In this document: piece after piece, positions 1 to 57,100 of the stretch
How positions within the stretch are numbered: the first letter of the stretch is position 1
Layout of the letters: the number at the start of each line of letters is the position of its first letter
Origin: Perkinsus chesapeaki ATCC PRA-425
Lineage: Eukaryota; Protista; Perkinsozoa
Assembly: GCA_013115145.1 (NCBI GenBank)
Contig: JAAPAO010000066.1
Coordinates: forward strand, 31,354-95,353
Length of the DNA: 64,000 nt
Reading direction: 5' to 3'
Notes under the pieces: generated by a model
The model's database searches: none
Told to the model about the DNA's origin: nothing
The model's input: the letters and a program-made list of their open reading frames with translations, nothing else
Translations under genes and position numbers: made by a program

Positions 1-2694
1 CAGATGCCAAGTCAGTTAAGCTGCTCGATGACGGATAGTCCTGCATAGCGTGACCTTCGCTTCCGGGAGTCTCCACACTAACAGGATAAGACGCCATGCT
101 GCCATTCAAACGACCCGGGTTCGATTCCTCCCCCTTCCCCTTACGGAGCGTGTATAGTAACCTGTTGGTCAGATGGGATGGACATTGCTATCGAGGAGGA
201 GCTGGTGTCATCAGCGTTCTAACAAAAACATACCGGAGAATCATGTAAATGGCAATGTACCTCCGATGAGCCTTGCAAACGGGAAGCGCTTGTCGAAGTG
301 TGTAGAGAATGTCCGGCAGGTTCGCTCCGTCCAGTTGCTTGACCACTCTTCTGGGCTCCATATTGTTGCTGCTGCTGCTGGACGTACTGGCCATAATGTT
401 GGTCCTGAGCGCAGGTTCAAATCCCAGTACCTCCATCTTTAATACCTGCTGTTGTTGCTGCCTCTGTTGTTGAGCCATCTGTTGCTGTTGCCACTGCTGG
501 GCGGCAAGAGCAGCTGCAGCTTGCTGTTGAACGAACATTGCTTGTTGCTGCTGGGCGGTGTACGATAGGTACCTACCGAAGAAGGACATCAACAAATATT
601 TCTCATTGATATCGGGAAATATAACTATACTAAATAATATAGTATAAATTATAACTCCCTCAGTTCCACCAAGCTAATCTATATTATTAATAATAATGTT
701 GATACAGGTCAATATAGTATTATCCCTTCTTGCGACTTCGATATGTCCGCCAAGGAGGGGAAAAAGCGATCGTTGATTTCATCCTTAGTCATGTCATCAG
801 CGTGTTCCCAAGGCGACAATGAAATTGGATTTTCGTAGTAGGAGTCTTCCTCTATGACTCCCTGGTATCAACGAGCAGCAGGTCTGTGAGCTATAGCAGC
901 TTTCCCTGCCAGAAGGATCATGTTACGGAAGTGTCCCCAAATGGAATGCATTCTGCCACTGGAGTTTCACGAGGAACATCCTAGATCTAGCTCAGCTGCC
1001 ACCTAGCCAGAGCGGTGGCAAAAGGATGATATGATACAGCCAAACCTAAAACCATTACATCTGTTGCATTGCAGCTTGCTGATGAAGTGATCGTGCAGCA
1101 GCCAAACTAAGGTTCTGTAGTTGAGCCTGAACAGTAACAAAAACCTACTGGAATTGAACCCTCTCCTTTCCCCTACCGGTGTTGGTTCGAAGCCTCCAGC
1201 GATCGACGCCACAGCTGCCGTTGCTGCCGTTGCCGCCGCCGCTGCAATGGCCCATTGTTGCTGCTGTTGAGCCGCGTAAGCCTAAATGTGCTTTAGGAAT
1301 GGTAAGACCTCATTGCCTATTACTGCAGGGTCCTGTGTTGGTCTCTGCTGCATAGCAGCCGCCTGAGCCGCGGCAGCGAGCGAACCGGAAAGAACAGTGG
1401 CGAATTGGTTCTGCTGGTACTTCAAAACCTCAGCTGGACTCACAGCTACCTCTGGTGGAGGAGTGAAACTAAATAAAACTATACATAGTCAAGTACAAAG
1501 GATATTTACATATTAGATGCCGGTCCCCGGGATTGAACCTGCGACCTAGGCATACCCTCATTGGAAGGATAAGCCCCCGCAGGCATAGAGGCAGTCTGAT
1601 CGAGGCTTCCTCTGGTGGGCTGCTGCTGCTGCATTTGAGGAGGGGTAGGCACATGTGATACCGGAGGTAGATCTTCCATGTGTTGCAACCCCGGTGGGCT
1701 GCTTGGTCGAGACCCCTCACCAGAATGGATAGACCCATTTTCCCCTTCCTGAGAAATATCTTAATGCACGCGTGCGCAAGGGGACCCTACCTCACTGACA
1801 GGATTCTGCAAAGGTGTGGTACCAGGTGTTATGGAAACGTCTTCAGGTCCAGAAGGCACACCTAAAGCTACTCATCTTTAAGCAATACTAAAATCCGATC
1901 CTACTGGGGCGCTGCAGTTCCGCTTCCCCGTGTGCAAATCGGCACTTGTCACCCATATCGCATTTGCCCTTCTGCCACCAACTGCACAGAACCTACAGCG
2001 ACGACCCTCCTCCTAATACGGCGACTGCTGCTATCTAAGTTCTACAGTCTTAAAGAGGCCTGGAGTGGCCTTGAGATCCTCAGTGGAGTGAGCGAACTGG
2101 CAGTCCTCTGCCTTATACGGACACCTCCCCTCAAGGTTAGCCTGGCACATCTTGGTCTTACGAAGATCTGGTCTAACTTGGATCTGGCTGTAGTCATGAG
2201 CGTATGTACCTGATGATGATGACGGTCCCGATGAAGCCCCCACCCTAGTAGACAGTCTTTACATTTATCACCGTATAGGCAACACCCGCGAAGGAAATGC
2301 TTGCATAGCTTTGTTCGTAAAAACTGCTTCCGAACTCCCGGAGCAACTGCACAATAAATCCATCGTGAGCATCCTTCTGACCAATTGTTGGGCCCTCACC
2401 TGCACTGTCTCCCTTGGGGCCATTGCTTGATGTAGGTGTGACAGCCCTGAAACGAACTAATGTGGCCGATCTTCGTCCCTCATCGGCTTACATTCCATTT
2501 CCTGACACCGATCTAGGATGATGATTATGCTTATTGCCTCCCTTCTGCCCCTCATGGTGTCCCGAATGTCGAGGGTGGTAGGGGGCCTGCAGCTGCTGCT
2601 GAGGCATGCCCCCATCAACATAGGGTACAGTGCCAGTCTCAGCGGCGGTGACCATGGGTCTGTTGGCGGCGCTATTAGTGTCCCAGGTATTCAT
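1..2694 (-). CDS. Triple CCCH zinc-finger RNA-binding protein (TTP/ZFP36-like) with Gln-rich C-terminal region; multi-exon, 3' end runs off the window
   Basis: Spliced reading gives RTKLCKHFLRGCCLYGDKCTYAH, KTKMCQANLEGRCPYKAEDCQFAH and KTVLCSWWQKGKCDMGDKCRFAH; start ATG at 2694 (MNTWDT); many short GT-AG introns. Confidence 0.85.
115..139 (+). other. tRNA 3'-end/B-box relic, antisense in intron 78-144 of the CCCH gene
   Basis: CCGGG TTCGATT CCTCC CCCTTCC C; ends 5 nt from the GTAAGG donor. Confidence 0.55.
380..435 (+). ncRNA. tRNA-like element lacking an anticodon arm, antisense in intron 378-445
   Basis: GGACGTA CT GGCC ATAATGTT GGTC CTGAGC GCAGG TTCAAAT CCCAG TACCTCC A: 6/7-bp acceptor-like stem, 4-bp D-like arm, B-box. 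Confidence 0.5.
1140..1163 (-). other. B-box relic, sense in intron 1127-1176
   Basis: GAGGG TTCAATT CCAGT AGG TTTTT; spacing to the T-run shorter than in other copies. Confidence 0.45.
1518..1542 (-). other. tRNA 3'-end/B-box relic, sense in intron 1469-1555
   Basis: GCAGG TTCAATC CCGGG GACCGGC A. Confidence 0.65.
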
Positions 2695-3104
2695 TTAGTA
2701 CATAAACTATAATAAGGGAAATTCTGAGACGACCGTCAGCAGCATATACACGGTAGAGTCCCCCATGTGAAAATCACCGTCCTCCGGCAACTTCTTCCCC
2801 TCCCCCTTGGTGAGGCAGACTAGTACACAACAATAACACGTATAGCATCACATTGCCGAATAATATACAGCATCCTTGTAGCTCCGCATGGAGTCTTCGA
2901 ATCCTCTGTTCCTCGGCGGCCAGAAAAGCTAAAGAGGGAAAACAAGACAAACATTGGAAGTCATCGCCACGAGCCAAGTAATAAGCTGACAGTCTCTGGA
3001 AGCTGCCCCCCTCCTACTGCCATCGACAAGGAGATGTTGGAATCACACTTTGCCAACCCAACACGGCATGTTCCGATAAAATCGACGGAGCGAAGCGACG
3101 CACG

Positions 3105-5160
3105 ATGGCTGATTTTAGACGAGGGCGTTGCGAGTTACAAAGTGCGCAAGATCTATCAAGCAACTTTGGATCGTTCCGGAAATTCATGCGTGCTAGCATT
3201 CGAAGCCATATCAGTGATGAGCGTGGGGTGAACACGGACGGGCGTGTCCGGAAAGGATATATTCTCGCTCGCCCACATCCGCAGTTTGGAAACGGCCGAG
3301 GAGAACGGCTCAGGGAGCTTTATGAAATGAGAAGTAAACTGATAACTGTGATAACGTCGTTTTTGCCGCTTATTAGACGGTTGGAACAACATTACCAAAA
3401 CAATATTAGCTGAGTATCGTTCTGGTAAATTACCAGGGGTAATGATGCTAGGTATTATTTAGTATCTCAGAGACTGCGTAACAGCAGTATGTTGTGACAA
3501 CATTGTTGTCAACAAAACCGATTCTCTAGATCGCGATAGCATCTTATGTCATCCCCTACTAACAAGCTACTACAGTAGTAGTAACTACAGTAGGTAGTAA
3601 CCAGCACGCTAACAACCCCGAAGGAGATTGGAGATCGACCCCAAGCAGAAATTTAACGCCCGCCCTACCCCCAGTAACCCCAGTAGCTTTCTCTTTTGAC
3701 TGGTCTCCTACGATAGAAGTCATCGGAGTGTCACCGGTCTCAGAGGCCTTCCATTTTTCGACTCTTCTTCAACATTTCTCGGATGATGCACCATGTTTTT
3801 ACGTGACTGCAACGCACAGATAGATTTTTAAGGAATAGAAGAGAACATAAGATATTAGCCTTAGGAGGCCAAAGCTTAGCTCGCACAGAGGGGACAGTGT
3901 ACGAAAGTGACGCACCGGGAATTGAACCTGAGCGTCTTGCAGAGGAATCTTGTGTTCAAATTTTATGGCACAAGTGGCGCTTTCTTCCAAGCACCAAGGT
4001 GCAACCGAAAATCCATATGGTAGAGCCAAACATCTATAGGTCTTGAACACGTTGCCGGCCGTTGTGAAATCTTGGACTTAAAATCCTGGTTTTTCTCAGA
4101 TGATAGTAGGGTGAGTTTTTGCCATATCGGTTCTTGTTATTATGGTTACTGATAGTAACTTACTATCGTACCAACCCCAGCCACGCTGAGGATCTCAGCC
4201 TGAGATGTGGTTTCTTCTTTATTCGAATTACCACCGTCTCCAGTATCATGATCGTTGTTGTTCAAATTGGTATCGGTACAAACAATGTAACAGTTCTTAA
4301 GGGGGAGCATTTCGGCCGGTTCAAAGTAGGGGAGGGGGTCGGGATGCCTACAGACCGTCCAGCAGCTCCCGGTTTCTTAAAAATGATTGAAACGAAATTT
4401 GTTTGACGAATCACGTTTATATGAGTATACCGATTCTATTAATTTCCGCAGGGTGGAAAAATTCATCAATTTTGATCAGCGCAGGGTTTCCGCTATTTTG
4501 GCAGGCTAGCGTACTAGCCACAAGGTGTTGTGTTTGTGTACCCGAATTGGTTTCCTCTTTTTGTGTAATTTCACTCTCATCGTTTCCTGTACAAAGGATC
4601 ATTTTCACAACTCGCACACACTGTGTACGCTATTGCGCAGGCATCTCGCCTGGTTCAGTGAGACCAGCACTGCTGGTCCAGCAGTGAAAGAGACACGGTG
4701 TCTCAGACACCTACGTTAGCGTGAAGGTGCGAAGTGTCGTCGTAGCAATCCTACGACCAACTGTCGGTGACAGCTTTGACGAGACGGGAAGAGCCACTTC
4801 GTACGTGAGATAAATGTCGTGCGCGATAACAACGGAGATGAACCGGGTTCATTGAACCCGCATTGCGTGCTCTGCAGCCATGCGCACAATGAAAAGCGCG
4901 AATTGTGCGAGGTGCGATACTTTTACTGCACTTGACTCATTGGGAGAAATTGCGCGCACTGCGTGAAATGCGAAGTGCGTTACGTGAAATACGCTACACG
5001 TGCAAAACACAGTCTTCTCTGCGCGCTAATACACGTGCAAAAGTACGCAAAAGCAGGCATTAGTGCTAGACTCATGGAATAATGTGTAGCAAAAAACTAT
5101 CGTCGCAACCGGGAATCGAACTCACGACCCTCTGCAGATCGAAAAGGACAGCAGGTAATG
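3105..5160 (+). CDS. Possible multi-exon hypothetical gene
   Basis: ORF 3105-3413 followed by a GT donor; frame-consistent mini-intron 3899-3942 and acceptor at about 5137; no recognisable domain. Confidence 0.25.
3907..3931 (-). other. tRNA 3'-end/B-box relic, antisense in putative + strand intron 3899-3942
   Basis: TCAGG TTCAATT CCCGG TGCGTCA C TTT. Confidence 0.6.
5101..5125 (-). other. tRNA 3'-end/B-box relic, antisense in a putative + strand intron ending at 5137
   Basis: GAGGGTC GTGAG TTCGATT CCCGG TTGCGAC G ATAG TTTTTT; retains a tRNA-like variable loop. Confidence 0.65.
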
Positions 5161-20281: not shown

Positions 20282-21437
20282 ATGCCAGTCTTCATCAAGC
20301 TCAAGTTCGACTCAGAGGTAGCCAGGTGGCGTATTTTCTATGTGCCAGCTCTCGCGGACGTCCGCCGATGCCTCTACGAAAAGTGGCCGCATCTGAGAGA
20401 GGACGCCAATGTTAAGTTATTCTACACCGACGAGGACGGTGATAAATGTCTGTTAAACGAGGACTCCCTGTTCGATGCGTGGGAGCTGGCTAAGCACCGC
20501 GTAGAGCACCAGGATGCTAGATCGCCGACTCTGAACCTGCTCGTCGAGCGTGGTACCTCTGCTATACCTCCAGCCGTTCACAGCCTATCTGGTTTGAATC
20601 TCAAGGGCTGTCTCTATGTGATACTGCCCATGTCTTATTATAACAAGTTGCTCGGCGACTCTATTATCAAAAATGATGTTGACGGAGGTAACCAGCTTCT
20701 GCCATCGCCATTCATGATAGTGTGTGCTGTATTGATTAATAATATGATCATTCCGAGGTGACCCCCTAAGGGAAACTGTAGCGAGGATTAGCGAGAAGGA
20801 TAATGATAATAGAAATAAGTTGTACATTGTATGCATCTAAAAGTCATAGTAGATATTGATAACATCTAAATGAGATATATTATAAATGATCCCTTGCTGC
20901 TATACTATATGCTATGTGACAACGGGTGGTATCTTACCGTTACCTTAATGAGGAGCCTGAGCAATGCAAAAGACCACTAAATTGATCCGGGAATTACGAA
21001 ATTTGATCCATGGGATATTGTGGGCATTCACGTACATCGGAATCATCACTGCTCAAAATTGCGACCATGACTGTTGCCACGTTCACTGGATACCTGCGAG
21101 GATGGGATAGCGGCTATCCGATAGCCAAGTGCTGCTTATTCTGTACAAACTCCTTATGGGTTTCTGTGAGATAATGTCGTTGAAGGAGGCGTAGCCTTGT
21201 AGGTGTTGTTGTAATAACGGGTTATTGATCGTCGGGGCGTGTGGCTCAACGGTAGAGCATCTGACTCCAGATCCGACGGCTGTCCGTTCGAATCGGGCCA
21301 AGCTCATTTTAGGCAGTAGGTCTGGTATAAACCCGGTCTTTTCAGATATCGCAGTCCTCGACTCTGCGTCCGATTCTGGCCACACCAGCTGCAGCAGCAG
21401 TGGAAGCTGGTTGAATGTTCCCGCTGAATCATTCTGA
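20282..21437 (+). CDS. PB1-domain protein D with putative terminal LIR exon
   Basis: PB1 (FIKLKF...YTDEDGDKCLL) from ATG 20282; phase-1 donors at 20553 and about 20690 fit acceptor 21312 and exon 21313-21437 ending SSSGSWLNVPAESF*; internal exons uncertain. Confidence 0.65.
21235..21306 (+). tRNA. trnW: tRNA-Trp(CCA)
   Basis: 72-nt cloverleaf with A and B boxes, followed by TTTT; G5.A68 and U29.C41 mismatches. Confidence 0.8.
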
Positions 21438-32764: not shown

Positions 32765-35700
32765 TCATCCAACTGCAGGTGCCGAATCTTCCACGCCGAG
32801 AAGGAGTGAACTCAGCGCGAACACTAGGAACAGAATGCCACCGGCGACCGCCACTTGTCGCTCGGATATTCGGCTGGCTAAAAGGCGACCTCCGATCACG
32901 GCTATTCCAGAACCTGATGGCACACCAGCGACTTTCACTGCGCCACGAAATTCATCACTTACATATACAGTGACCTAAGATACCCCCTAACATAACACCG
33001 TAAGGGTTCTTAGAGGAGGCCAGCGCTATGGTCGATATTTGACTCCGGTCGCCCCACTCGGCAAGGAACGACATAACAAATGACTGAAGGGAGATGCTCA
33101 GGTTGATAATATCTTATTACTGCTCATGCACGCTGATGCAGGCTTCAAGTAGCAATAATAATTATTATTAATATCGATAAATAGTAAAAAATGAAAGATG
33201 GAGTAAAACAAACAATACACTAGTCCATATGGTTTCCAGAACTCTACAGTAGAGTCTCTATTATCAACGCTGAAGGACCGAACGTAGGGACTTACTTGTA
33301 CTAAAACAGCTCTGTTCTCTTTAGAATACCAATGTAATGATGGTGACGCATTATCCTGACAAAAATACCCTAACTGAGGATCGAACCCACGCCCCCTCAA
33401 CTGCAGTAGCTTCTCCTTCCTCCATTTGAGCACCTTGCTCATCTACAGTATCTCTATCATGCTCCTCATTCTTCTTCCTAAAGATCAACTAATTACAGAA
33501 ATGCAATTGAATTCTAACAATGTCCTTGTACTTTGGAAATCCTTAAAACACACGGCAATTTAATTCACTTAATTTCAACGAAGAATTCGAATTCTCCTAT
33601 ATATTGATAGCTTAAAGCTGCATAGCTTCTCATGCGGGTTGCCTGCGACCAAAGAATATAGCACAGTGAGAGTCGTAGGTTCGAATCCCAGCCAAGACAT
33701 TTCTAAAAATGTCATATGGCCATATCGCATTGAGCACATTATTAAAGATGAATAGTCTACTCGTGCTTGAATGTATGAATATTAATTATCCTATCATAGC
33801 TCTCTGTGATACATCAAACAGATGTACAAGCTTGTAAATATAGTTCATTGACACTATTGTATTCTATTTCATTGCGCAGAAAGCTTCACGCGCCAAGATA
33901 TCAGTAGATAGGCATGAAACGGTTGATCGATTTAGTGTTATGTTTTTAAATCCCATTTTATTACTCATGCTTATCACCTTCCAGCACTCGATGTTAAGTG
34001 AGAAATCGGAAAAGTACTAATTATTCTATTTTATTGCGTCGGGCGGTAGGTGGGTGCCGCTATAATAATAAATTGACAATTTACCATCCTAAAGGTCATA
34101 ATGACATTGACAATTTCCAGATTAAACATTTCCAAAAGAATGATTTCGTGGCGCGCGACTTCGTTATCCCACTTACTTGACACTCATTTCGACTTCAGCT
34201 AATTCCCCTGATTCAGCAGAGTCATCTGCATCACAGGCGTCTTTTAGCAGACGAATACCTGATGAAACCAAAGAGAGCTTAAGTGTTAAAACATCTAGAA
34301 GACAATATCAGTGTAAAGTGAGAAGGGGTAATGAAATGGTGCCACTCGACAATTACACTGCTGCTGCTGCTCGACTATCTTAAGGTGTCTTGCAGCAGCA
34401 GCACTGCCTTGAGACTAAAGTGACAGAGAAGTCGTCACTGAAGCGTTGATGTTGCCGAAATGAAAGTCGTAATAAAATTGTAAAAACCAATTATGACCAT
34501 GATCCGTACGTTTAACCGAGCAAGCTATCGAACGAAAACAACAGCAAGAATTTCAATGCCTTAGTCGGCCCAATATACACCACCGGCAGGAGCAGCACGG
34601 AGCATCGCTTTCGAGGATTTAGGTGTACAGCAATAATTATACCGAATTTCCCACAACTCACCAAAGTATGTAAATAGGGCAATGCATGCATAGTGCGTTA
34701 CTTTCTTGCTTAATAATGCTGGTAATAACAAACCAAGCCCAGCTGATAGAACCTATGTACTGGACAATTCACCAATATTGGGACCATACAGCACCGATCG
34801 ACTAATCTGCGCCAAAGATATCCAACGTCACACTATGAATTCCTCGCCAACTCAAAAGCCCATCACACTTTCCTCCCAAAAACCAGATCGAATCCCATCG
34901 TGAGTGCATTGGAGCTAATAACCTTACCGAAAAGTGAACCACAAACTCATTTCTCGGGGCAGTCCTCTCCTACAGACGAACTGACAGATGCTCGAAAGGG
35001 TACGTAGATCAAACCACACCGACTGGGCGGCTCGATTCGTATACATCTTCCCCCCCTCACCGTCATAGTCGCCAATGCCGCAATGGCTCCAGCAAAGACA
35101 ACTGCAGCACTGTTACGCATTGACAGTATTGCTGCTATAAAGAACGTCTTATCGCCGAGCTCAGCACACAGTATCATAAGAAAGGATGATATGAAACCGC
35201 CCAGGAAGGAACCATTGGAGCTACTACCAGCGGACAGTTTCGCGAGGAGGGACGAGGTATCTGATAAACACCACCACCACCACAATCAGGTGCACATTTA
35301 CCAGTACGTTGAATATATATAAAAGTCTCTTAGTGCATATTTTTCGATATTTTAGTGTATCACTCACTGCTAAGCTGTTTATGAAGTATTGTCTGCTCAG
35401 CTGCCTATCTCAGGCAGACCTGTTAAGTATCTACCTCTATTCTCCATCCACAGTGGGCGTCCGCCAAGTGCTGGCTGCTTCGTTTCTACGATCAGCTCAC
35501 ATTTTCACCAACGCACTCGTACAAATTACTTCTTCTACGCACACTGTATATGTTCAACGCATGCTCTACCGCTTTTATGACACAGTCGACTTTTCAGAAA
35601 CCGCCTCGGGAATTCGAACTGAAATTGATAGTTCGACATTTCCTTACGGTTCTGTTTTTGATAATATTTTATATTCGAAATCTCTCTCAAGCTCACTTCT

Positions 35701-36930: not shown

Positions 36931-36955
36931 ACAGGTTCGATTCCGGCATGTGCTA
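36931..36955 (+). other. tRNA 3'-end/B-box relic (host context unresolved)
   Basis: ACAGG TTCGATT CCGGC ATGTGCT A. Confidence 0.55.
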
Positions 36956-37380: not shown

Positions 37381-37405
37381 CGCTGCCGCTGGGATTCGAA
37401 CCCCC
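37381..37405 (-). other. tRNA 3'-end/B-box relic, antisense in a putative + strand intron
   Basis: GGGGG TTCGAAT CCCAG CGGCAGC G TTTTT. Confidence 0.65.
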
Positions 37406-41250: not shown

Positions 41251-41299
41251 GAGACACGAGATGCGACTTAACTAACTGTATAGGAATAAACCACTAGTC

Positions 41300-43970
41300 G
41301 GGTCTGTTCGAAAATATCTTCGCCAGGGAGCTTTGAAGCTCCCAGAACGAATGTATTTGGTGTTTCCGTTTGGACTAGTGACATACTTATCCTCCTTGAT
41401 GTAATAGTATTGCCCCCGACAGTGGCCGATGACCTTGAGGTCAGTATTGCGTACGGTTCGGTTGCTTCAATTGAACAGCTCGCCCGATCGATCTATGTCT
41501 GTCGTAGCTATTTTGTTATCATGCACGCATATACAATTCAGCCTCTCGACTTGCTGTTGGGTTAGCACAGTTCTATCGACCATCCCAACACCTTTAATCC
41601 CCATTATAAGCACTCTCTGATCGCCCAGTAGGAAATTTCTGTGAGACTGGAGGGCTTCCTAAACCTCGGCTATAAAACTTTCTAACCTGGGGGCTCCAAT
41701 GTCTGCCCTTCCCGGGCCTGTGATGCGCGGAGAACCCCAACACGTTCATTGCCAATGACTGATTGAGAAGATCGACAATTCACAGGCACTTTACCATTTT
41801 CTCAACCCCGGGCTCGGACCATCCCTCAGTTTGAGGTACACGGAAATCGGGAATACCAATTCTGACTCGGACTTCCGACCGAGTTTCATCTACACGCTTA
41901 ACACTCCTCTCTTAAATGCGCACACATATTCCCCCATCATAGCTCGTCTACTGCACCCACTCTATGAGCCGGACTAGCTTTGAGAGATCTATGCATTCCC
42001 AGCACCGCCGCCCCCGCCCCCCAAATCCCCACAGTGCGAATAGATACCATCCGTACTACCCTAATCTTCCCATCAGCCTTCTTCCCTCCACCAGCAACAC
42101 CACGCTTCCCTTCTTCAGCTACCAAAAAACATCCTTCACCCGAAACACCAAAGCCCGACGACCTACTGCTTCCTAGTGCCGACTTGGACGCTCTCGGCTG
42201 AAGTGGCCGAGAGCTCTCTTTTGGAGCTGCATTGCGATTCTCTAATATACGTGACGCATACGCCTTCTGCTGCCTCTCTTTGAGCCGGTCTCTCCGCCGG
42301 TCCAATTTTTGTGCCTATAAATACCCTGCCCGAGGATCGAACCTGCGCTCATATCACCAAACTAGCAGGCAAGGATTCCACTGCCTGATGCTGCCCGGCA
42401 TATACTTCCGCTCTGCTGTCACTGCGGGTGGGCACGGACTCGACTGGAAGGCTGCTCACCGGACGCAACTGGCAAAATAGGCTATTATCCACTCAACATG
42501 AAAATTTCACTCGTTAAAGAGATTTATTAAATAGAGATTTCTGTCTCTTATTCCCGTTGTTTCCAGAATGATGAGTTACCTTATCTTCATTCGTATTTTC
42601 CCGACTATCTCCCGGTCCTATCCATTTCCACTGAACTGCAGATCCATCAGTATCGACTGTAGGCACTTCCCCTTTGCCTTTCAAGTACGCTTCAACCTAA
42701 GATACGCGGTTCGAATCACCTGAGTTTTCGCGCAGAACAACGGTTCTACTCCACAACTTCGAAACCCGATTCACGAAGTCCTTCCCTTTGCAGGTCCCAT
42801 ATTCTTTATTTCTGACTAGCTGCCCCGCTTGGCTCTAATCCAGGAATAATTCTCCATTCAACACAACGGTTGTATTACAACCATGCCCTCCTACTAACCT
42901 GCGGGAAGTTTGTCAATTTCAAAAATTTTATGGGCACCGACACCACAGAGTAGTGATTGGGTTCCCAGAATTGAACACTCCGAAAGCAGTGTTGGCACGC
43001 CTGCCGGCGGCCCCGAAATCACCTCCACGAATCTATATGAGAAATGAATTTTAGTTCCCTGGGGGACTTCACGGATGATTCCCCAGAATCTTTCTTCCTC
43101 GGCACCATGCATATCCCCTCACCGGCAGCGCCCCTTACTCCTTGAGTCCTCAGAAATTCCGATTCTGCCCGTAACGTTCCTCCTGCTGCCGAATCCTCTT
43201 CTTTCCTCCCATCTACGTACGAGGCTGGATTGTAACTAGCAAACTAGAGGCTGTCTAAGAACAACATAACCCAATCTCCTCAAATGAACCTGCCGGAACC
43301 ACAGTACAGCGCAAGCGTCCTTGGCAGCTCTACTATAACGAAAGATGAGATAGTATCTCTGGGCGCACAAGATAGCTTGAAGAAATTAAACTCCCTTAAA
43401 AAATTTTTTTGATGTTGAAATAAATAGCAAGGGATGGTATTCAATAGACACGACGTAGACTTTATACTCTTACAAGGCTCCAGGATGAGGAGATACGGCT
43501 GATGGCATACGGGCAATAATATCGGAATAATAATAATACTATTATATTCTTGATCCGACTCCTGACCACTAGTGGTGATCAAGCAAACGATGCAAGCAAT
43601 CAAATGTATATTCATGACTTTGTATGAATTCAAGTGACGTACGAATTGCGCCCTAGAGAGGTCATTATCCATCCGCGAGGTTACGGGGTCGAGGAAAGCG
43701 TGCGTTAAAGAGTCCAGGATCCCAGCTCATAGATATAGCTACCATCGAAGCCCCGCATTCAGCGATGGAACCCAGGAAATACCTCTGTTTTCAGTTGCCG
43801 CTCTCAACGCCCGTATTACTCGATATTATCGTGCATCAGCAGCAACTCCTCCTCGCTCTCCCCCCTCTGACGTTCGCCCTCACCCCCATTCTCCTCGCTC
43901 CGCGCCGCTGCCTCCTTAGCTTTCCGTCTTTCGACTTTCAGTTTCTCAGCACGCGCAATCTGACAAAGCC
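41300..43970 (-). CDS. Multi-exon hypothetical coding region (N-terminal part of the kinesin gene or a separate gene)
   Basis: Frame-consistent exons such as AQKLDRRRDRLKERQQKAY, VEAYLKGKGEVPTVDTDG, IARAEKLKVERRKAKE; no domain recognised. Confidence 0.4.
42322..42346 (-). other. tRNA 3'-end/B-box relic, sense in a mini-intron ending at 42315
   Basis: GCAGG TTCGATC CTCGG GCAGGGT A TTTATAG|. Confidence 0.7.
42705..42729 (+). other. Weak B-box relic, antisense at an intron 3' end
   Basis: CGCGG TTCGAAT CACCT GAGTTTT. Confidence 0.4.
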
Positions 43971-47689: not shown

Positions 47690-50600
47690 ACTTCTCCACT
47701 TACGCTGGTTCCGCAGGCTCCCCTATGAGCAGCCCTGATTGATTCAACTCCCCTCGAACATCATCAACATCAAGCCTCGGTACAAAGCATCCACTCTGGA
47801 CCTACGCAGGTTCGAATCCCACCTCTGGTATTTCTCTTTAATTTACATTATAAGGAGCTGCTGTATGATTTCCCCTCATCCTGGCCTCGAATTCCCTTCC
47901 TATATCAGCTTCCCTATAATAATCCCTCTCGTTGGATTCTCTATCAGATATCCCCAAGTTGCCATTAACCCAACCAACTCGCTCGCCATACTTCGCACCT
48001 GCACTTTTTTGAAGTGTCTTGGAACCTCTAAGGTGCGAATCGAAGGGCACAACTCACCAAGTGATTTGGGGACCTTCCTCTTGGAGAAGTCTATTCCAAG
48101 CTTCATCGGTGGGCCTTCTCTCAATCCATATCCCAGTTTAGCATCCAAACAGCCGCTGCCTGCCTCCTTACACTTCCCAAGCATTATCTTGAACGAAATA
48201 ATACATTTACCCAAGTCGATGGAGCGGCAACTATATCAAAAATACTCATTGCTTAGAATCCACGCAAGTTCGATCCTCGCCTGCGACACTCCTTACCGTT
48301 CCTTTAGTCATCCATCGTTTTTTCCTTCTCTCTTCCTCCTCACTCCCCTGTTCTCCTCCAAAGGTGACTCTATTACCACTTACTGCCTAAAACACATTCT
48401 CTAAAACATCAATCTCGACAAAACTTATTTTCCGACCATCTGATAAGATTAACGTACCACCAAGTGGACTATATAACTCACACAATTACTGTCTATCGCA
48501 CAATTGTTGCAACACCTCATTACTAGCTTTCTCTACTTGTAATACTTTTACCCTTCACTCACTTCCTTCACTGCCCTATTTCGTGACTAACTATGAGCCC
48601 AATCTATAATTGTTGTGTTACAACAACGACTACGCTGTCCCTGACGAGATAGTGCAGGGAGGTCGATCCCTGCACTAACATCACTCACTGGTCTCCCTAA
48701 CAAGAAATTTCCACTTTAGTGCATAACAAAATCTGTTATCTCAGCATTTCCTGCTAAAATATGAACGAACTGTTGAACCATTATAATATTAATTCATATA
48801 GTAATATTTTATTCTACCTTCATTTGGTGTTTAAATACTTCTTTATCCTTCTTGGCTCTCTCTACTGCCTCGGCCGCCAACACATCACAAGAGTAATGCA
48901 CCGACCTAATTAGAACAAATACTAATACCGACATGTCAGCATTGGCTAGATAGACACAATCGCCTTTGTGAAAAAAGGGAGGATATGATACGCACTGCCA
49001 GCCTCCTCCAACAAAATTATCATAGAAGTCTTGATGCGACAATAAGAACAACTTTATAAACTACCAACTAGTCAAGTTTCTTGAAGCCTCATCTATAAGG
49101 CTGCCTCATGCCTTGGCTCCAAAAATATCCCTTATATAACTTTATGGACCGTGAGTCTGTTTTATCATCAATCAGATCCTTGTATACTAATATTGCGAAA
49201 GAGAAAGAAGATTTATTGTTACACTCGTTGCTGTGCTTGTTAAAGGCAGAACCGGATGTCCTATGATAGCATAGTCCTATTGCTCCAAGCCAGTAAAGCT
49301 CGCGAGATAGTCCCAAATTATGCTTCTCGCAAATCATTCCGTACAAACAAAGAGCATCGGCCCGAAACCAGGAATCTTACTTATATATTTCAGATGGTCC
49401 AAACTCTGTTAAGAATCTTTTACTGGTGGACTTAGGATCAAAAGCTTGTGGATCCACCGGGACCCCTACGCGGCACTTTGGTACTCTTTGAGATTGCAAA
49501 ACAATGAAGTCGTTTATGGCCGGCTGAAGAATGAAGAGGCTCATCCACATTAAATGGAAGTAATTGCTTCGAACAGGGAAGAGCCAAAGAAATCGAACGA
49601 AATAAGAACACAGGAATTTACCTACATACTTTCATAAGTTTACCTTTTAAACAAAAAGTAAATTTACTTACCTTGCATACACTGTATTACTGATGATGTT
49701 AAACTAAATTACAGTATATTCACAATCCAGCAACATCACAGTGCTGGTGAAAGCTCCTTTATGTAAAACTATAACCGTACTGTGTCTTTCAATCTTCAGC
49801 TACTGCTACTTCTTGCTGCGTAAAGCTTACCCCTTTTTAATCAGACACGAGAGTGCTTAAAAGAGAGTATAGCGCGCTCTCAAGCGCTATCTAATTGCCG
49901 TCCGATAAATTTTTGCCTCGTCAGCTACCAGCAATCTTCCCTTACCTCCCACGGCATAGCTCCAGACAGCTCTTCCAGTCTAGACTCCGATAACGGCACA
50001 GTATGTATATGATCTGCTCGCCTGTAAGCTGATGGGGAAGATGGCCTTGGGTGCCTGAGAGGCAGCATTAATCCAATTAATCAACTTCGAGGATTACCGC
50101 CACTCAACCCTCCGTCGATCCGTAGCGAGCTTGGCAGCGGCCAGCCTCTCCTTGAGAGAAGCTCTGCCTTCATTCACTGATTAGATTCACATCCAAAGCA
50201 CCCAGGTTCGATCCGCGCAGCCTACTCCTTCCCAAATCTAAAGTATTGTTGAGGCATTCCCTACTGGCGGCAGCTTTGCTGCTCGGATCATTCTCAACTG
50301 GGTCAGCAGCATTGCTCATGCCGAAGGTGTAAACCCCGTCAGAAAACTGAGATTGAGGAGTGTAGGAATTTTATAGAGTAAAAGATCAACGCCTCGGTAG
50401 CTCAGTCGGTAGAGCGCGTGCCTTTTAAGCCCGTGGTCGTGGGTTCGAGCCCCGCCCGAGGTGTTTTACTTACCTCATCTCGCAACCGCTTTTGCTCCGC
50501 ACCAACAACTGTGTTATACGTTTGTATTGAATAGTTAAAAGGTCCACTTGCTCCATCATAAGTACGTCGTTTTTCCAAAGCCTTCTTTATCAAATCTGCA

Positions 50601-53600
50601 GAAACCAGGCATGTCCCAAACTGGGACTCCCAGTCAGCCAGCCCGTCAATATTTCCGCCAACAGCCTCAACACGACGTTTGACACAAACTTAGTAACTGC
50701 AACTAGCGCGCGCCCTAAAAACCATCTACACGCATGCGCAGCCGCTATACAAATACAAGTTGTGTTACACAACATACTATATATGGTATACTATATACAG
50801 CAACATATTATATCTGTATACAATAATATATTGAAGTGTACGAAGCTGCCAAGTAAAGGCGAGGAAGATAGTCAGCCTTTGTTAAAGGCAGCAGCCCACA
50901 CCTACCCTCGATCGGTCGATCTATTATCTTTTCTACTTGGTATTTTCTTTTCCGTCGTTCCATCAACACCTACAACAATAATGGTGATTTAACACGAAAG
51001 TATCCAAAGTAAACCAATACTAGCTACACGGTGCCCCCAGCGTAAATATTCCGCAGTCCTCTACAGGGCAGAATTTACACACCACTGAGTCAGTGACACT
51101 GACCTATATAGCTAATTTTCACAACGCTCAATCATTGACTTAATGGACCATTATCTGAGACTCGCAGCCTGAGGCAGCCCCTGTACAGATCTTGCAAGGT
51201 CAGCTAGATATGGAACACATTGTATAACGAACGTAATTCAATTCCAGTTTCAACTGGCCACAGCACTCACCTTGTCAAAATTAGGATTATGCGACTCTAC
51301 ATGAGTCGACCGCTCCCGTGCTGTCGGTTTGCGTTTTCGGAGCACCTAACACCCCCACATGCATTTCACCATCAACACCAGCCTACCTGTATCTCTCCCT
51401 TTGACATGTCCTGCGCCTCAGATGCATAAGCAGCGGAACGCGGAGATGAAGCTGCCGTTGTTGCCGAAGATCTTCGACCTGTACAAACAGTTGTTGATGT
51501 CAGTTATAAGATATAAAGTTGATATCCCATATACATTCGAATACACCAAAAACGCCTTGAAGACTCTTCCTTAGGGAGAGTAATCCGCTCACCGAGTTCA
51601 CACGCGACCAGAAAAAAACTAGATTTCACACTTCAAGAACTCTTCACAACCAGACAGCGATGCAACTCTGAAGACGCCACCTCACCTACCCATCCGTTTC
51701 CTTCTAGATTGGTCCTCGGCATCTCCCAAGCATCCTCCGACCACCTCACTATCCGACACGAAATCACCGTATCTTAAAAACCGCAGTCGATAAAATACAG
51801 CACCGTGAATGTGTACTTGGTTTGGATATCATACAGATCCTCGACACTCGGCCACACCGATCTTGACATTTTCAAATGCCAAATGCTTTGACATAATTGG
51901 AGCTCACCGAGTCGAGACAGAGAATCTCCCCCACAGTCGACTCGCGCAACTAAAAAAAGTAATACCCGGTAAAGCTTGCGCCACAATAACGACCATCGAA
52001 CGTGGCGTCTTATATCTACAGTTCAAATAGGTATTTCTAAAGGCTTTCGCAAAGCGTGACGCTTTCAGCAACACTTAGGAACGAAATCGCACCCGAACGA
52101 TTCGCGAATCTTTGCTCACTGAGAAGATTCCTTAATGGCTTCCTCAACTTAACGACAAATAATCTCATTGATAGATCGGAATAGATGCGGTCGGTCCACT
52201 GACACTGTGGATGATACCTGAGTATCCAAGCTCCAAGGCCGCAAGATACGTTCAAGCTCAAGCCTCCACTTACAATGCACGCCCATGCTTCTGTATGCTG
52301 GTCTCCGTCGATACGAATCTGTATAGCTCAGCAACTACTCTTCGAGGACCCTCGAAACACCATATACGCTGCCGCTTATCCATGACCTATCCGCAAACCC
52401 GAGTTCGAACCCCAGCGGCGGTACTTCTAAACCCACCAGCCAGCTTGTCAAAATCTTCTTCTTCTGTTCCTCAGTTACTTCTACTAATCTTGACAGCGTC
52501 CCGCCCATCACATTCTTATTATAGTCGTTCACAAATTTGACCAGGCCCCTGAACACCACAGCAATCTACAGCCTGCCAAATAATAATATAATATTTCTAA
52601 ATTTCAATCTTTTTCTACGAAAACTCAGTGCTGCGTGACGGAACTTCGTGGGTATAGACTATCGGACATCGAGGATTATATTTCAAATCGATCCACCGTT
52701 TCACGTACGTCTGCTGGGAGTCTCCCAGAAGAATCAAGAAATCATGATCCTCTAGTGTGTGTGAGTTTATAGTCCAACGCCAAAAATGTCTCAGTTAGAC
52801 CATCCATTCGATGTGCCACTGCTGCCGGAAGAGTTTGATACCTATACTGTTTTATCACTGTATGGGCCATCCAGAAGAATCTAACTGGTGTCAAGGGATC
52901 CGACCCCTCCCAGCAGAGTTCACTTACGCCTTTAGCATCAGCGATCAAATGCAAGCTGTACCACACATCGTTGTCATCGGTCGACAGTATAATATCAGTC
53001 TGCAGCTTAATACAGTTTTAAGATGGCTGATAGCCTAGTAAAGTACCTCTACGCTACAGCAACCATTAGAAGTAGCTGTTCTCTATAACAATTTTTCACG
53101 AGCATGCGAATCACATCTCTCATGCCCCCCCAGTGGCCACCCACCTTGCCCCATCCCTTGATGCTTTATATCCGAATATCAAACCTGATGAGACAGATAG
53201 CAGATCAGCCTACTAAATCACGCAAACTCACATAGTCGTCCGATGTCTCCCTCGTCCACAACTTCACTAACGTTCTCCCCCTCCTCTTTTGAACATGCTC
53301 CCCTAACTTCCCTTATCGGCCCAGCCATCCGTATGATATATTGAACAGTTGTATCTATCAAAAGCCTCAACAACTTCAACAGTTAACAACTATTTGCAAC
53401 CTACCAAGCTCAAGCCATGGGATTAAGGGCAGCCTCTTCGGTTTATCACTCAACTTTATCGGCTCCACCGATAGAATTTCCGGACACTTCAGATGGCCAT
53501 TAGCAGCACCTACGAGAAGGAAGCTTCTTATGAAGCGGCCCGAATTGAACCAAATAATAAAAATTAACAAAAGATAATAAAATCGCTAATTTTTCCCCGA

Positions 53601-56600
53601 TTTCCAATTCGGCTTGATTCCCTATTTACCCGCCATAACGATTAAGTGCCCAGCTATGATATGATCAAGCATACGATATACGTGCTAATCGTATGAAATA
53701 TTTCTACGGCGGCGGGCCCTAAACTCCCAAGTCTTACCTGCGCTGTCGTCACCGGGAGATAACTTCCTTCCGGCGTTCTTCGGTGGTACTATGTTCACGA
53801 CACCACAGGTTTCAACTGAAAAAGAAACACATAATATTATCACCCAATCATAAGCACGCAAATCGATCAAGTGATCGATTCTTTCACCAGAAGGATCTTG
53901 ACAACCGCATCACAAATGTTCAAAGGTAGTGTTCCAACTAGCAAGTAGCGAGCCTCTATAGTATTCAATTTACGGTATTGCGTTGATCTTTTTCACCAAC
54001 TACCAGTCTCCCAAGAATCTTAGCATCTTTCCTCGACTTCACAAGCTCCCCCCCACTGACCTTTATCTAGCCTCAATAGATCAAGTGCTGACAGGAGCGC
54101 CATGCCTAACACAGAGTCCATCATGAACCAACAAGTAATATGCAATGTTATAATTCTTCTTGTCTGGGAAAGATACGCCACGATGAGGTCTAACTGTCCC
54201 TTTACAAATACGTGGCGCATGACGAACATCAAATATGTGAGGATGCGTAGATATAGGAAGTATCCAGTTCCCTATCCGCCCTGAATGCGAAATGCACGCT
54301 TCAACCTACCAACAATGATATCCTTTCTTCCATCAGATTTAATTATCTCTACCCTCGGAGCGCTAGATGCTTCCCTACAGGCTTCCCAGAAATGACGGGT
54401 GGAATATATTCCAGGGAAGAATCTAAAAGAGAGACCATCTACATAATACTCATACCAACACTAGCAGTTCGGCCACCGCGGAATTTCCCGGCGCCACGTC
54501 CGCTATATCCCTTTCTCTATCCCCACACAATCATTCATAAATCACAGGTCTGAGACGTAGAAGGATCGATTGGGTAACGAGCCCTCCTCCGGTAGATGGA
54601 GCCTTATAGATGTCGACCCCTCCCCGTATAACTCAGGTTGCCGCAAATATAGTTATGTCCACACCGAACCATGTCTGCGTGCAGTGCGAAGCTGTTCTAC
54701 TGTATCCAGTTCTATCGCCGGGGGGTTGCCGCGTCAAAAATGAACTATGAGGAGGAGCAGCAAGATACGACTGGCTTACCCTATCTCAATCGGATACAAC
54801 CAATGGTCCGTCGATGCAGTCGGTGTAAACCCCCAAAAGGATATCCTTGCACGCATGCTCTCCTGAGCAAGTGGATGATACTTAAGATACGTCTACATGA
54901 AGTAACCTCATCCGGAAGATTCTTCATAGGTCCAACTTTGACAACCATCGGATGGAGTGCTTCCAATAATTCCGCAGAGAGAACATTTGCTGTTTCGCCG
55001 ACAACTTGGACAGTAGCATTAATTGACGTGTGCCGGGATCGAACCTTCGCGGGTTTACCGACCAACAATGGCGCCAGATATAGCGGGACTGACATCAACA
55101 TCACTCTCCAGTTACAATACAAAAAATCAGCTAAATTCGGCCAAAATTTTGCAAAATTCTCCCGTGGGCTTTCCAGAGCTTATTGAATGCGCCCTCAGAC
55201 CCACCTCGCTCCGACGCCTCCTCAGCTTCATTCTCCTCACCTTCAAAACTACGACTTTCTGAAATTACAGAAAAATGCCTCTCCCAAGAATCGAACCTTC
55301 GCCTTCACCTTTGACGTTCATCCACATAACCGCGCTCGCAATACTCCTGGCAACATCAAAGTTGACCTCAATCGGAAACTCTTTCTCCCAACGCCTTCTA
55401 TCGCCTACCACAAAAAGTTCATCGCATCAACAATAACAACGTTGCTATGAAAGGTCGGACGATTGATATGAGGTGACGCACATTCGCTCTCTTCTTCACT
55501 TTAACATTTTCATCACATTATCACACACAGCGGGCCCTCCTCAATAACTGTTATACTGAACATTGCATCCTTAATGTTTCCCAGTATTAATAACTAATAT
55601 AGATTAAGCAACGAGAGTCCCATGGATGCTCATCCGTAAACTCAATGAAACTATCTTGAGACATAAGTCCCGTCTCGAAACAGTTCAATTGAAAATAAAA
55701 CAAATGTCGAAAATAATGAAATGTGTTGAGAATAATGTCACATAAAACAACGCTAGAACACCGTCGGCCACCCTCCTCAGTTTTGCCACTAACTTCCCCG
55801 CCAGAGCGCTACCGACTACTCCAATGCCCCGAGATCTAACCAACCCTCACCGCCAGTATATCAAGGCGACCACACTTAAGGACACCGCTACAAATCCTCA
55901 TCAAGCAANNNNNNNNNNNNNNNNNNNNNNNNNNNNNNNNNNNNNNNNNNNNNNNNNNNNNNNNNNNNNNNNNNNNNNNNNNNNNNNNNNNNNNNNNNNN
56001 NNNNNNNACAACAAGCAACAACAAGCAACAACAAGCAACAACAAGCAACAACAAGCAACAACAAGCAACAACAAGCAACAACAAGCAACAAGAAGCAACA
56101 ACAATCAACAACAATCAACAACAATCAACAACAACACATTATTATTATTATCACCTTCTGCATTCTCCTCCCACTCAGCCATAGCTTCTCCACACTCAAC
56201 CGTCGTGCCCGCCACCGCAGAGTCATCCACAGTAAAAGACGGCCAATCCAAAGTGACATTAACTTTGCGGATTTCGTTATCTCCACCTAAGAATACCTTC
56301 CAGACGCCCATCTCATCCTGCCCATACCTTCATTTGCCTTATTAGGAATACTCAGTCGTACCAATAGCATTGATGGTTCTGAAATAATGGTAAAGTAATA
56401 GACAAATCAAGTAGCGCCGATGAGGTGATAATTCTGGAAAGAGGACATGTCATGTCTCGCCAACAACTAGGATTACGAATTTTGACATGTGCCGGGATCG
56501 AACTTGCGCATTACGACTTTATCATCGACTTTATGCGAGGACGGCAAGTGCTTTCACACAAAGGCCACTCACAAGCGTAGCGAAACATGACGAAAGAATT

Positions 56601-57100
56601 GTTTCCAGGAGTGAGGAGTGTCATTTACGATCCCCTCTGGAATCAATCACACTACTGAATTACATTTCATAAATATCCCAACCACCGCTGAGGGATTCTA
56701 ATAAGGTCATTTGAGTATTTGGAACGATACTAAATCGCCTCAGCTCACAACAAACTTAAGCAGTTCGAAAGAATACAGGGTACAGCAAAAGGACAATAGA
56801 AGTGCACTTTGGCATTATGTAGTCTAAAAACCGTCATACATACGGTTTTCATACCGCTCCTTCCTCTACTACTTCCAGGCATCGCCTTCAATACAGCATC
56901 AGTAATCAACTCTCCTGAGCTCCCTATCTTCCTTCTAGGAACATCTGCTCCATTCCGCGCAGGGTCGAATCCCAGCGACGGTACTTCATTTTCAGCACTC
57001 TTCTTTGCAGGCATTATAATACATAGTCAACTTAGACTGCCTAAACACCCAATTACCCATCCGCCCCCTCTTCAATCTTCGTAATATTTCGCCCAATGCC
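47690..57100 (-). CDS. One or more hypothetical multi-exon genes; boundaries unresolved
   Basis: Runs of phase-consistent exons, e.g. GAEQKRLRDE|FSDGVYTFG...|NEGRASLKERL, ESNERDYY...PYN|VQSGCF, ILTSWL|VMDKRQR; no domain recognised. Confidence 0.4.
47806..47830 (+). other. tRNA 3'-end/B-box relic, antisense in 45-nt intron 47802-47846
   Basis: GCAGG TTCGAAT CCCAC CTCTGGT A TTT. Confidence 0.7.
48264..48288 (+). other. tRNA 3'-end/B-box relic, antisense in intron 48231-48296
   Basis: GCAAG TTCGATC CTCGC CTGCGAC A; 8 nt from the donor. Confidence 0.65.
50202..50225 (+). other. B-box relic, antisense in 49-nt intron 50177-50225
   Basis: CCAGG TTCGATC CGCGC AGCCTAC; ends at the donor. Confidence 0.5.
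50391..50463 (+). tRNA. trnK: tRNA-Lys(TTT)
   Basis: 73-nt cloverleaf followed by TTTT; U29.C41 mismatch; antisense inside intron 50347-50473. Confidence 0.9.
52399..52423 (+). other. tRNA 3'-end/B-box relic, antisense in 50-nt intron 52387-52436
   Basis: CCGAG TTCGAAC CCCAG CGGCGGT A CTTC. Confidence 0.65.
55024..55048 (-). other. tRNA 3'-end/B-box relic, sense in putative intron 55005-55058
   Basis: GAAGG TTCGATC CCGGC ACACGTC A; the 54-nt intron is in frame and stop-free, so the intron call is less certain. Confidence 0.6.
55276..55300 (-). other. tRNA 3'-end/B-box relic, sense in 50-nt intron 55259-55308
   Basis: GAAGG TTCGATT CTTGG GAGAGGC A TTTTT. Confidence 0.65.
55902..56134. repeat. 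10-bp microsatellite-like array (ACAAGCAACA)n beside an N gap
   Basis: Direct reading; decays into ACAATCAACA. Confidence 0.9.
56483..56507 (-). other. tRNA 3'-end/B-box relic, sense in 48-nt intron 56467-56514
   Basis: GCAAG TTCGATC CCGGC ACATGTC A. Confidence 0.6.
56959..56983 (+). other. tRNA 3'-end/B-box relic, antisense in putative intron 56945-56998
   Basis: GCAGG GTCGAAT CCCAG CGACGGT A CTTC; in-frame, stop-free 54-nt intron. Confidence 0.55.

Follow-up and report, generated by a model that had tools for sequence, protein, structure and literature searches.

Why should the introns of protein-coding genes carry, time after time, a short piece resembling the 3' end of a tRNA gene? The question is raised by a 64,000-nucleotide stretch of DNA (the 64-kb window) from Perkinsus chesapeaki, a parasite of oysters and clams. 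A sequence-only reading of this window had listed 20 copies of a 25-nt module corresponding to tRNA positions 49-73, and all 20 were found again where it had placed them. On the two strands of the window the B-box pattern RGTTCRANNCY has 20 matches, where 100 dinucleotide-preserving shuffles of the window average 3.93 (sd 2.18, max 10) and none reaches 20 (0/100), an excess of about five-fold. The matches comprise 17 modules, the T loops of two real tRNAs (tRNA-Lys and tRNA-Ala) and one exonic match (1184-1194), in agreement with the 17 strict copies, single exonic copy and roughly four chance matches claimed before. The three remaining modules (42708, 50205 and 56962) each depart from the pattern by one base, and all 20, none of them a tRNA, thus carry the B-box consensus of an extra-TFIIIC (ETC)-like site.

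In module-rich stretches the density is about one site per 2 kb. The B box served as search key, which makes its uniformity from one paralog to another circular in part, and modules 55045 and 56504 share an 86-nt duplicated segment and are therefore not independent copies. Five N gaps occur in the window; four were seen directly to lie within tandem-repeat arrays, and the fifth (55909-56007) probably does as well, judging from the neighboring repetitive translation. No N gap falls within 490 nt of any module, so the result is unaffected.

Outside the search key, unselected positions also carry a signal, among them a C at -4 (C48) in 17/20 modules, and the core corresponds to positions 48-73. 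Position 72 is a pyrimidine in 19/20 copies, and A73, previously counted in 13 of 18 scorable copies, was confirmed in the same number, here out of 20. A T-rich tail follows position 73, with T at +23/+24 in 15-16/20 modules and at least four consecutive T within about 12 nt past position 73 in roughly 7-8/20, the T runs being degenerate in most antisense modules. The modules share an extended consensus, in which the B box is preceded by C-G-C-A and followed by C-R-G and which does not pair as a T stem; the acceptor strands differ among modules, as expected of different isotypes. The B-box core, TTCGAA, is near-palindromic and is the same in both orientations.

The modules do not have a tRNA fold. 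By hand count, the outer T-stem pairs 49:65, 50:64 and 51:63 are formed in 24/60 cells, which is chance level and bears out the earlier impression that they are mostly broken. The absence of a 5' tRNA half was likewise upheld, with A boxes not enriched in the window (33 matches, 27 expected) and no tRNA called at any module by ARAGORN in standard, intron-tolerant, pseudogene or mitochondrial modes. A search with Rfam RF00005 down to E=10 returned only the three real tRNAs of the window. Upstream of the copies inspected by eye, only one stretch looked like a 5' acceptor strand able to pair with positions 66-72; this 7-nt match, ahead of module 37402, falls within a conserved exon and was put down to chance. 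The modules are accordingly not functional tRNA genes, as the complete cloverleaf is missing, nor halves of split or permuted tRNA genes, given the A-box and T-stem counts.

An origin from tRNA-gene 3' ends, as had been suggested, is nevertheless supported by sequence features: there is no CCA, a T-rich tail follows position 73, and a decayed whole tRNA-like element is present in P. olseni (L001, at 273). The ortholog of that element in the P. chesapeaki window has a broken B box, which indicates that turnover is real and that not every copy is protected.

The host genes lie on the - strand, and the modules occur in either orientation, as first described, with 10 sense and 10 antisense. Introns were checked against RNA, as had been proposed, and two were confirmed. 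In a GDT1-like gene, RNA contigs from two runs skip 33355-33400 (46 nt) and 33477-34175 (699 nt), both GT..AG on the - strand. The first of these spliceosomal introns is filled by the sense module 33387 (33366..33390, - strand), and the second contains the antisense module 33678 (33675..33699, + strand). The intron calls for the other 18 modules come from reading frames or orthologs only. Alignment with P. olseni places two of them at the 5' ends of longer introns: the sense module 37402 (37381..37405, -) begins 6 nt past the donor in a ~266-nt intron (37408 down to 37143), and the antisense module 36934 (36931..36955, +) lies in one of ~300 nt (36956 down to ~36653). Judged by reading-frame continuity only, 11 further modules can be fitted into GT-AG introns of 41-90 nt. 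The description of the hosts as mostly 44-90-nt introns therefore stands for the RNA-proven 46-nt intron and approximately for these 11, but does not extend to the hosts of 699, ~266 and ~300 nt.

Among the sense modules, that at 1139..1163 (-) likely occupies intron 1127-1176 (50 nt), where its T run feeds the 3' splice site, and that at 1518..1542 (-) a predicted intron (1452/1479-1555) of a tandem CCCH zinc-finger gene. The module at 42322..42346 (-) likely lies in intron 42315-42357 (43 nt), module 55045 (55024..55048, -) in 55005-55058 (54 nt) and its paralog, module 56504 (56483..56507, -), in 56467-56514 (48 nt); module 55297 (55276..55300, -) is in, or overlaps the donor of, a candidate 38-50-nt intron ending at 55259.

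The likely hosts of the antisense modules are an intron at ~101-168 for 115..139 (+), based only on reading-frame continuity in a CCCH/Q-rich gene, and 405-445 (41 nt; alternatively 387-430) for 411..435 (+), where Q-rich frames are joined over GT..AG. Module 42708 (42705..42729, +), whose B box ends in A, likely lies in 42697-42738 (42 nt), the module at 47806..47830 (+) in 47802-47846 (45 nt) and module 50205 (50202..50226, +) in 50177-50225 (49 nt). Candidate introns at 48188-48287 and 52335-52424 (90 nt) contain module 48267 (48264..48288, +) and the module at 52399..52423 (+), and module 56962 (56959..56983, +; GGGTCGAATCC) likely lies in 56935-56998 or 56935-56985. In 4-5/10 antisense modules, among them 36934, 48267 and that at 52399..52423, A73-C74 read as its reverse complement supplies the donor GT.

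Two further - strand modules are 3928 (3907..3931), whose flanking ORFs gave no Pfam match, and 5122 (5101..5125), where GTG followed by AGTTCG forms a donor-like GTGAGT. A gene finder based on codon usage, trained on the long ORFs of the window, chained too many exons together, as did its longest-chain variant, and both served as rough guides only. Pfam yielded no useful match for 20 ORF fragments near the modules in the 3-6 kb and 47-55 kb regions, a homolog search with ORF 54784-55179 gave no match, and a search with exon 52745-53017, which encodes an ankyrin repeat, gave for that reason only bacterial ankyrin-repeat proteins. No run holding 47500-53400 was listed in an RNA run search over that stretch. 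Contigs carrying orthologs of the ion-channel gene are only 1.5-1.9 kb long and do not extend to modules 56504 and 56962.

The proposed comparison of orthologs was carried out with P. olseni and a third Perkinsus species (L003), a very small sample in which four modules could be compared with P. olseni. Two of these are shared with that species and two are missing there. At fourfold-degenerate sites, identity to P. chesapeaki is 34% for P. olseni and 22% for the third species, and synonymous sites are thus saturated. Module 33387 lies in the same intron in all three species, with pairwise B-box identities of 10/11, 9/11 and 8/11 and 8/11 positions invariant across the three; in its 3' extension 9/16 positions are invariant, versus 44/75 and 30/60 in the flanking exons. 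Between P. olseni and the third species, this intron is identical at 38/48 positions, a neighboring tiny module-free intron aligns only as noise, and module-free introns gave no BLAST match between species. Module 37402 has an ortholog in P. olseni (L001 77-105) with 10/11 B-box positions identical and the T run kept. Substitutions are at the free positions 59 and 60. Module 33678 has no counterpart in the P. olseni intron, and module 36934 is absent from that species.

Conservation of the kind known from ETC sites was thus found, against saturated synonymous sites, at two of the four comparable modules (33387 and 37402). A B box that stays nearly unchanged while neutral DNA is scrambled is probably still in use. 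Together with the T-stem pairing at chance level, this near-invariance supports the earlier proposal that sequence, and not RNA fold, is what is retained.

The explanation to which we give about an even chance, judging from these sequence comparisons, is that the modules are remnants of tRNA genes within introns, their extended B box being retained as a site in DNA, with TFIIIC as its likeliest reader. The starting state would be tRNA genes inside introns of protein-coding genes, and intact tRNA genes are still present among the genes of the window: a tRNA-Trp(CCA) gene at 21235..21306 (+) and a tRNA-Lys(UUU) gene at 50390..50464 (+), both found by ARAGORN and Rfam. The latter is antisense to the surrounding - strand genes, its B box lies 237 nt from module 50205, and it would represent the source state of the decay series.

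Decay would then have cost these genes their 5' half, their cloverleaf and a large part of the terminator, sparing a core of ~25 bp in which the B box is extended 3' by roughly 10-15 bp. Purifying selection would hold this core as DNA, whichever its orientation relative to the host gene. The descent from tRNA genes, the intronic position (from RNA for two modules), the missing tRNA fold and the conservation of two modules between species are shown; protein binding as the selected function, and TFIIIC as the protein, most likely through its B-box-binding module, are inferred. The modules would then be a putative Perkinsus equivalent of extra-TFIIIC (ETC/COC) sites, placed within gene bodies. 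Deletion would meanwhile shrink the intron toward a minimum of ~41-50 nt until the splice sites abut the protected core, and a minimal intron of this kind accordingly appears to be built from a tRNA tail.

A role at the RNA level, in which the TTCGAA core acts as a branch site or splicing-factor site that aids very short introns, is unlikely, even though many modules fill introns of 41-50 nt and a palindromic core would account for orientation independence. The two conserved modules, 33387 and 37402, are moreover both sense and near splice signals, and splicing could therefore account for part of the constraint. Against this, the core lies ~10 to 34 nt from the 3' splice site in short introns and ~200-260 nt from it in long ones (33678, 37402 and 36934), a variation that led to rejection of the palindromic core as a branch point. 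TTCGAAY is also a poor match to the yUnAy or UACUAAC branch consensus, and a branch site would have no need of the conserved G52-G53 and C61-C62 or of the 3' extension.

That the introns were created by a tRNA-derived mobile element, introner-like or SINE-like, with the consensus reflecting a master copy and not a function, is quite unlikely. The extended consensus common to copies that do not pair as a T stem, and the frequent coincidence of splice sites with the tRNA 3' end in antisense donors, would suit such an element, and a P. chesapeaki-specific intron (58362-58823) holds broken B-box-like pieces. By self-BLAST, however, the module introns have nothing in common beyond the ~25-nt module, apart from a single related pair (54966-55050 and 56428-56509) that is 77% identical and part of a segment duplication. 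The A-box excess, common body and tail, and the many similar copies of a tRNA-derived SINE are missing, as are terminal repeats and any obvious target duplication, and the acceptor strands vary as they would among isotypes. With one related pair only, and with two modules orthologous in two or three species, the modules do not fit the introner class, and the suggested Introner-like route, in the sense of a recently active family, is not supported. Since those two modules are orthologous despite saturated synonymous sites, any burst would be ancient and the consensus seen today must be selected; an ancient origin via insertion of tRNA-gene fragments may still apply.

It is improbable that the modules are short Pol III units, or give processed tRNA-like RNAs resembling 3' tRNA halves. 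Such a unit would have the observed order of a B box and then a T-rich tail, with the T runs counted above in a minority of copies, but an A box or other upstream promoter signal is lacking, the T stem is at chance, the copies inspected have no 5' acceptor strand beyond the one exonic chance match, and the T runs are degenerate in most antisense copies. RNA contigs have no ends at the two modules that they cover, an observation from tiny runs that is nearly uninformative here.

Neutral debris, in which tRNA genes often land in introns and decay slowly, leaving the B box as the last recognizable and search-selected part, is the least probable reading: the circularity of the search key and the visible turnover (2/4 modules missing in P. 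olseni) are in its favor, but at 22-34% fourfold identity a neutral 11-mer would be 10/11 identical with a probability of ~1.6e-4 (calculated here), and this identity was found at 2/4 comparable loci, along with a conserved 3' extension. The T stems are broken, which led to rejection of the idea that real tRNA genes maintain the modules through gene conversion.

A gene-body TFIIIC network fits the orientation independence, the extended B box and the conservation seen in these sequences, and it has partial counterparts elsewhere. The ETC sites of budding yeast and COC sites of fission yeast are B-box-only, with a consensus that extends ~10 bases 3' and is conserved among relatives (PMC3395662), and the Perkinsus modules are similarly B boxes without a functional tRNA gene. 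Yeast ETC sites, however, are scarce, with eight in S. cerevisiae, and occupy the space between divergent genes, whereas the putative Perkinsus sites are dense, lie in introns of transcribed genes and visibly come from tRNA-gene 3' ends. Transcription-independent TFIIIC sites in C. elegans are over-represented in introns and tied to tRNA- or repeat-derived sequence (PMC6950938), but these ride on the CeRep3 repeat family in long introns on chromosome arms, while every Perkinsus copy is unique, many of them filling a minimal intron.

In mammalian introns, TFIIIC binds the tRNA- or 7SL-derived Pol III promoter boxes that SINEs (Alu, MIR, B2) bring into Pol II genes, with effects on chromatin (PMC7014570, PMC3744447). 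A SINE belongs to a family spread by retrotransposition and has a body and a tail besides its A and B boxes; the modules in Perkinsus have neither A box nor family body, and end in a genomic terminator and not in CCA or poly(A). The likeness to introners is that a short intron is almost wholly one recognizable element, but introners form near-identical, recently inserted families, whereas the modules have only the 25-nt core in common and some are ancient and orthologous. No published description of intronic B-box modules in Perkinsus was found.

A more far-reaching version, offered tentatively, is that these are a dense, selected network of extended B-box sites in introns of Pol II genes, descended from tRNA genes in introns and recognized by TFIIIC or some other factor, which could organize chromatin or pace transcription along long one-directional gene arrays whose transcripts are spliced-leader trans-spliced. 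Taken furthest, the idea would have an entire minimal intron survive on account of the site it carries, and introns would gain a reason to be kept. If TFIIIC or another factor does dock there, the density of B-box-only sites and their placement, in minimal introns of expressed genes, would be undescribed in any organism. The purpose of extra-TFIIIC sites, the retention of tiny introns and the use of tRNA genes as raw material for introns would then be linked, and annotators of alveolate genomes would have a recognizable intron class. Short, numerous and conserved sites in a culturable organism make the idea directly testable.

The spacing of the modules also looks paired, 9/19 gaps between neighbors being 237-468 nt long, which may perhaps be just the spacing of an exon plus an intron.

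All 20 modules listed in the sequence-only reading, each a segment of about 25 nt with the geometry of tRNA positions 49-73 around a B box, are present where that reading had placed them in the window, the terminal 64 kb of Perkinsus chesapeaki contig JAAPAO010000066.1. The strict B-box pattern RGTTCRANNCY has 20 matches on both strands of the whole window, compared with a mean of 3.93 and a maximum of 10 in 100 dinucleotide-preserving shuffles. These matches comprise 17 modules, the T loops of real tRNA-Lys and tRNA-Ala genes, and a single exonic match at 1184-1194, where the opposite strand encodes G-F-E-P; the other three modules are one base off the strict pattern. The window as a whole yielded just three tRNAs with ARAGORN in four modes and with Rfam down to E=10, none of them coinciding with a module, and a generic A-box pattern shows no enrichment (33 matches, 27 expected). 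When tRNA-Lys is counted, nine of the 19 gaps between neighboring B boxes from 115 to 56983 are 237-468 nt long, with none shorter; about two gaps in this range would be expected under random placement at the same density. Either the spacing of exons plus introns or a true pairing of sites may account for this clustering.

The 20 copies were aligned on the B box, and the non-selected columns were then read. Column -4, corresponding to tRNA position 48, is C in 17/20 modules, and columns -3, -2 and -1 are G, C and A in 14, 12 and 13 copies, respectively. Columns +11 to +13 carry C, R and G, position 72 is a pyrimidine in 19/20, position 73 is A in 13/20, and T is found at +23 and +24 in 15-16 copies. 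Flank signals of this kind mark the 3' end of a tRNA gene together with its genomic terminator. CCA is absent after position 73, and the source of the modules is therefore tRNA genes rather than mature tRNAs. Pairing at the outer T-stem positions 49:65, 50:64 and 51:63 is seen in 24 of 60 cells, close to the approximately 37% expected by chance; the fold is thus gone while the sequence remains, which bears out the earlier proposal that sequence and not RNA fold is retained.

Self-BLAST of the window revealed no similarity among the module regions apart from one pair, 54966-55050 and 56428-56509 (77%), which lies within a duplicated segment; the copies therefore do not represent a recently amplified family. 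They may go back to an ancient tRNA-derived mobile element, as the non-pairing sequence shared on either side of the B box (GCA before, CAG after) and broken B-box pieces in a P. chesapeaki-specific intron would allow, but no family structure exists today. This 462-nt intron (58362-58823, minus strand), in a cyclic-nucleotide-gated channel gene, contains two broken B-box-like fragments and is absent from P. olseni (contig L007) and from a third Perkinsus-like species (contig L006); it represents a gain or loss between species.

At its 3' end, the intron that contains module 37402 (37381-37405, minus strand) carries in P. olseni a whole but decayed element resembling a tRNA (L001:229-301), with an A box as well as a B box; the T run of this element serves as the polypyrimidine tract of the intron. 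This element is not called as a tRNA by ARAGORN or Rfam, and its P. chesapeaki ortholog (around 37160-37200) has a disrupted B box (GGTTCTACCCT). Intact tRNA-Lys and tRNA-Trp genes sit among the module host genes. Together with this pseudo-tRNA, they point to a decay series, in which an intact tRNA gene would become a pseudo-tRNA and then a 3' module, to be retained at some loci and lost at others.

RNA contigs from two small runs of the same organism were compared with the region 32600-38500. They define a spliced minus-strand mRNA of a GDT1/TMEM165-family gene (32742-35949), with seven GT..AG introns of 506, 308, 403, 699, 46, 212 and 49 nt. The 46-nt intron (33355-33400) is essentially module 33387 (33366-33390) in sense orientation, and the 699-nt intron (33477-34175) holds module 33678 (33675-33699) in antisense. 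At its loose 5' end (35949), the mRNA carries a match to the Perkinsus spliced leader (PMC3101222), indicating that the transcript is trans-spliced. In the public annotation, this gene, a kinesin and others are fused into a single chimeric product of 2132 aa extending from 57014 to 32765. One of the RNA runs also contains another expressed version of the GDT1 exons (32742-33083), about 15% diverged, mostly at every third base; it may represent a homeolog, a paralog or a divergent haplotype.

Frame joining places modules 118 (115-139), 414 (411-435), 1160 (1139-1163) and 1539 (1518-1542) in short GT..AG introns of a CCCH zinc-finger/Q-rich gene at 1-2.8 kb. Likewise, frame-joining minus-strand introns of 42-90 nt would host modules 42343 (42322-42346), 42708 (42705-42729), 47809 (47806-47830), 50205 (50202-50226), 52402 (52399-52423), 55045 (55024-55048), 56504 (56483-56507) and 56962 (56959-56983). 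Modules 37402 and 36934 (36931-36955) occupy the 5' ends of two longer introns, of about 266 nt and about 300 nt respectively, bounded by exons conserved with P. olseni. Modules 3928 (3907-3931), 5122 (5101-5125), 48267 (48264-48288) and 55297 (55276-55300) fall outside these assignments. Every host gene that could be resolved lies on the minus strand, which makes 10 modules sense and 10 antisense. The plus-strand GC skew is strongly negative across the 28 kb from 32000 to 60000, in agreement with minus-strand hosts, and each gene resolved there (GDT1-like, kinesin, cyclic-nucleotide-gated channel, inferred module hosts) is on that strand, which suggests a one-directional gene array.

In short sense introns, the module T run leads into the 3' splice site; in four to five antisense introns, the donor GT is the exact reverse complement of A73-C74; and in the remaining module introns, core-to-splice-site distances vary. 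Such a layout would be expected of introns that lose sequence by deletion up to the point where their splice sites border on a protected core. A role in splicing at the RNA level is made possible by the palindromic TTCGAA core, but the distance from the core to the 3' splice site ranges between about 10 nt and over 200 nt, which argues against such a role. Small Pol III transcripts are a further alternative, against which stand the absence of both A box and fold and the degenerate terminators.

Synteny with P. olseni (contigs L001 and L004) and with a public run of the third, more distant Perkinsus-like genome (L003) was anchored on a neighboring single-exon RRM gene. Identity at fourfold-degenerate sites of this gene is 34% with P. 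olseni and 22% with the third species, and neutral sites are therefore saturated; no module-free intron was aligned between species by BLAST, though exons align. Module 33387 occupies the same intron in all three species (46, 46 and 48 nt). Its B box shows pairwise identities of 10/11, 9/11 and 8/11, with 8/11 positions invariant across the three species, and 9/16 nt are invariant in its 3' extension (positions 63-73 plus the T run); in the flanking exons, 44/75 and 30/60 are invariant. Between P. olseni and the third species, this intron is identical at 38/48 positions over its full length, and an adjacent tiny intron lacking a module yields only noise on alignment. Module 37402 is shared with P. 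olseni, with 10/11 B-box bases, 6/11 extension bases and the T run preserved, and in each of the two species the donor GT precedes the module by a few bases; the changes fall at free positions 59 and 60. By our own calculation, the chance of 10/11 matches at 34% neutral identity is about 1.6e-4 per locus. Conservation does not extend to every copy: P. olseni has nothing corresponding to modules 33678 and 36934, which are both antisense and in long introns. An origin of the modules as neutral debris is contradicted by the conservation seen against saturated neutral sites.

The data favor action of the modules as a DNA-level site, because orientation is irrelevant, no fold is preserved, conservation covers the B box and a 3' extension, and substitutions respect the B-box consensus. 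TFIIIC is the known reader of the B-box sequence. The reading ranked first, with roughly an even chance of being correct, is that the modules would be sites like the extra-TFIIIC (ETC) sites, derived from intronic tRNA genes. A close precedent is provided by yeast ETC sites, in which a B box is joined by a conserved 3' extension of 10 bases and which are kept between species (PMC3395662). The evidence is much stronger for an origin from tRNA genes, for placement in introns and for selection on some copies than for which factor would bind them. The nearest known kinds are extra-TFIIIC-type B-box sites and tRNA-derived intronic sequence. A literature search found no description of intronic tRNA-derived B-box/TFIIIC modules in Perkinsus; the nearest Perkinsus paper concerns Dada transposons, which insert into abundant Perkinsus tRNA genes (PMC3706591).

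No N gap lies less than 490 nt from any module. By self-BLAST, tandem repeats flank four of the five gaps, and we infer the same for the fifth (55909-56007), directly after which the translation is repetitive. The arrays at the gaps (9126-9465, 14335-14874, 16272-16641, 46880-47317 and 56008-56106) are built of repeats roughly 25-66 nt long, several of which are coding, and the gap lengths probably hide collapsed repeats. Four further stretches are mutually similar (17709-17767, 22541-22677, 23849-23907 and 52754-52899); the database matches of one copy, at 52745-53017, are ankyrin-repeat proteins only, and the four are probably ankyrin-repeat exons of different genes.
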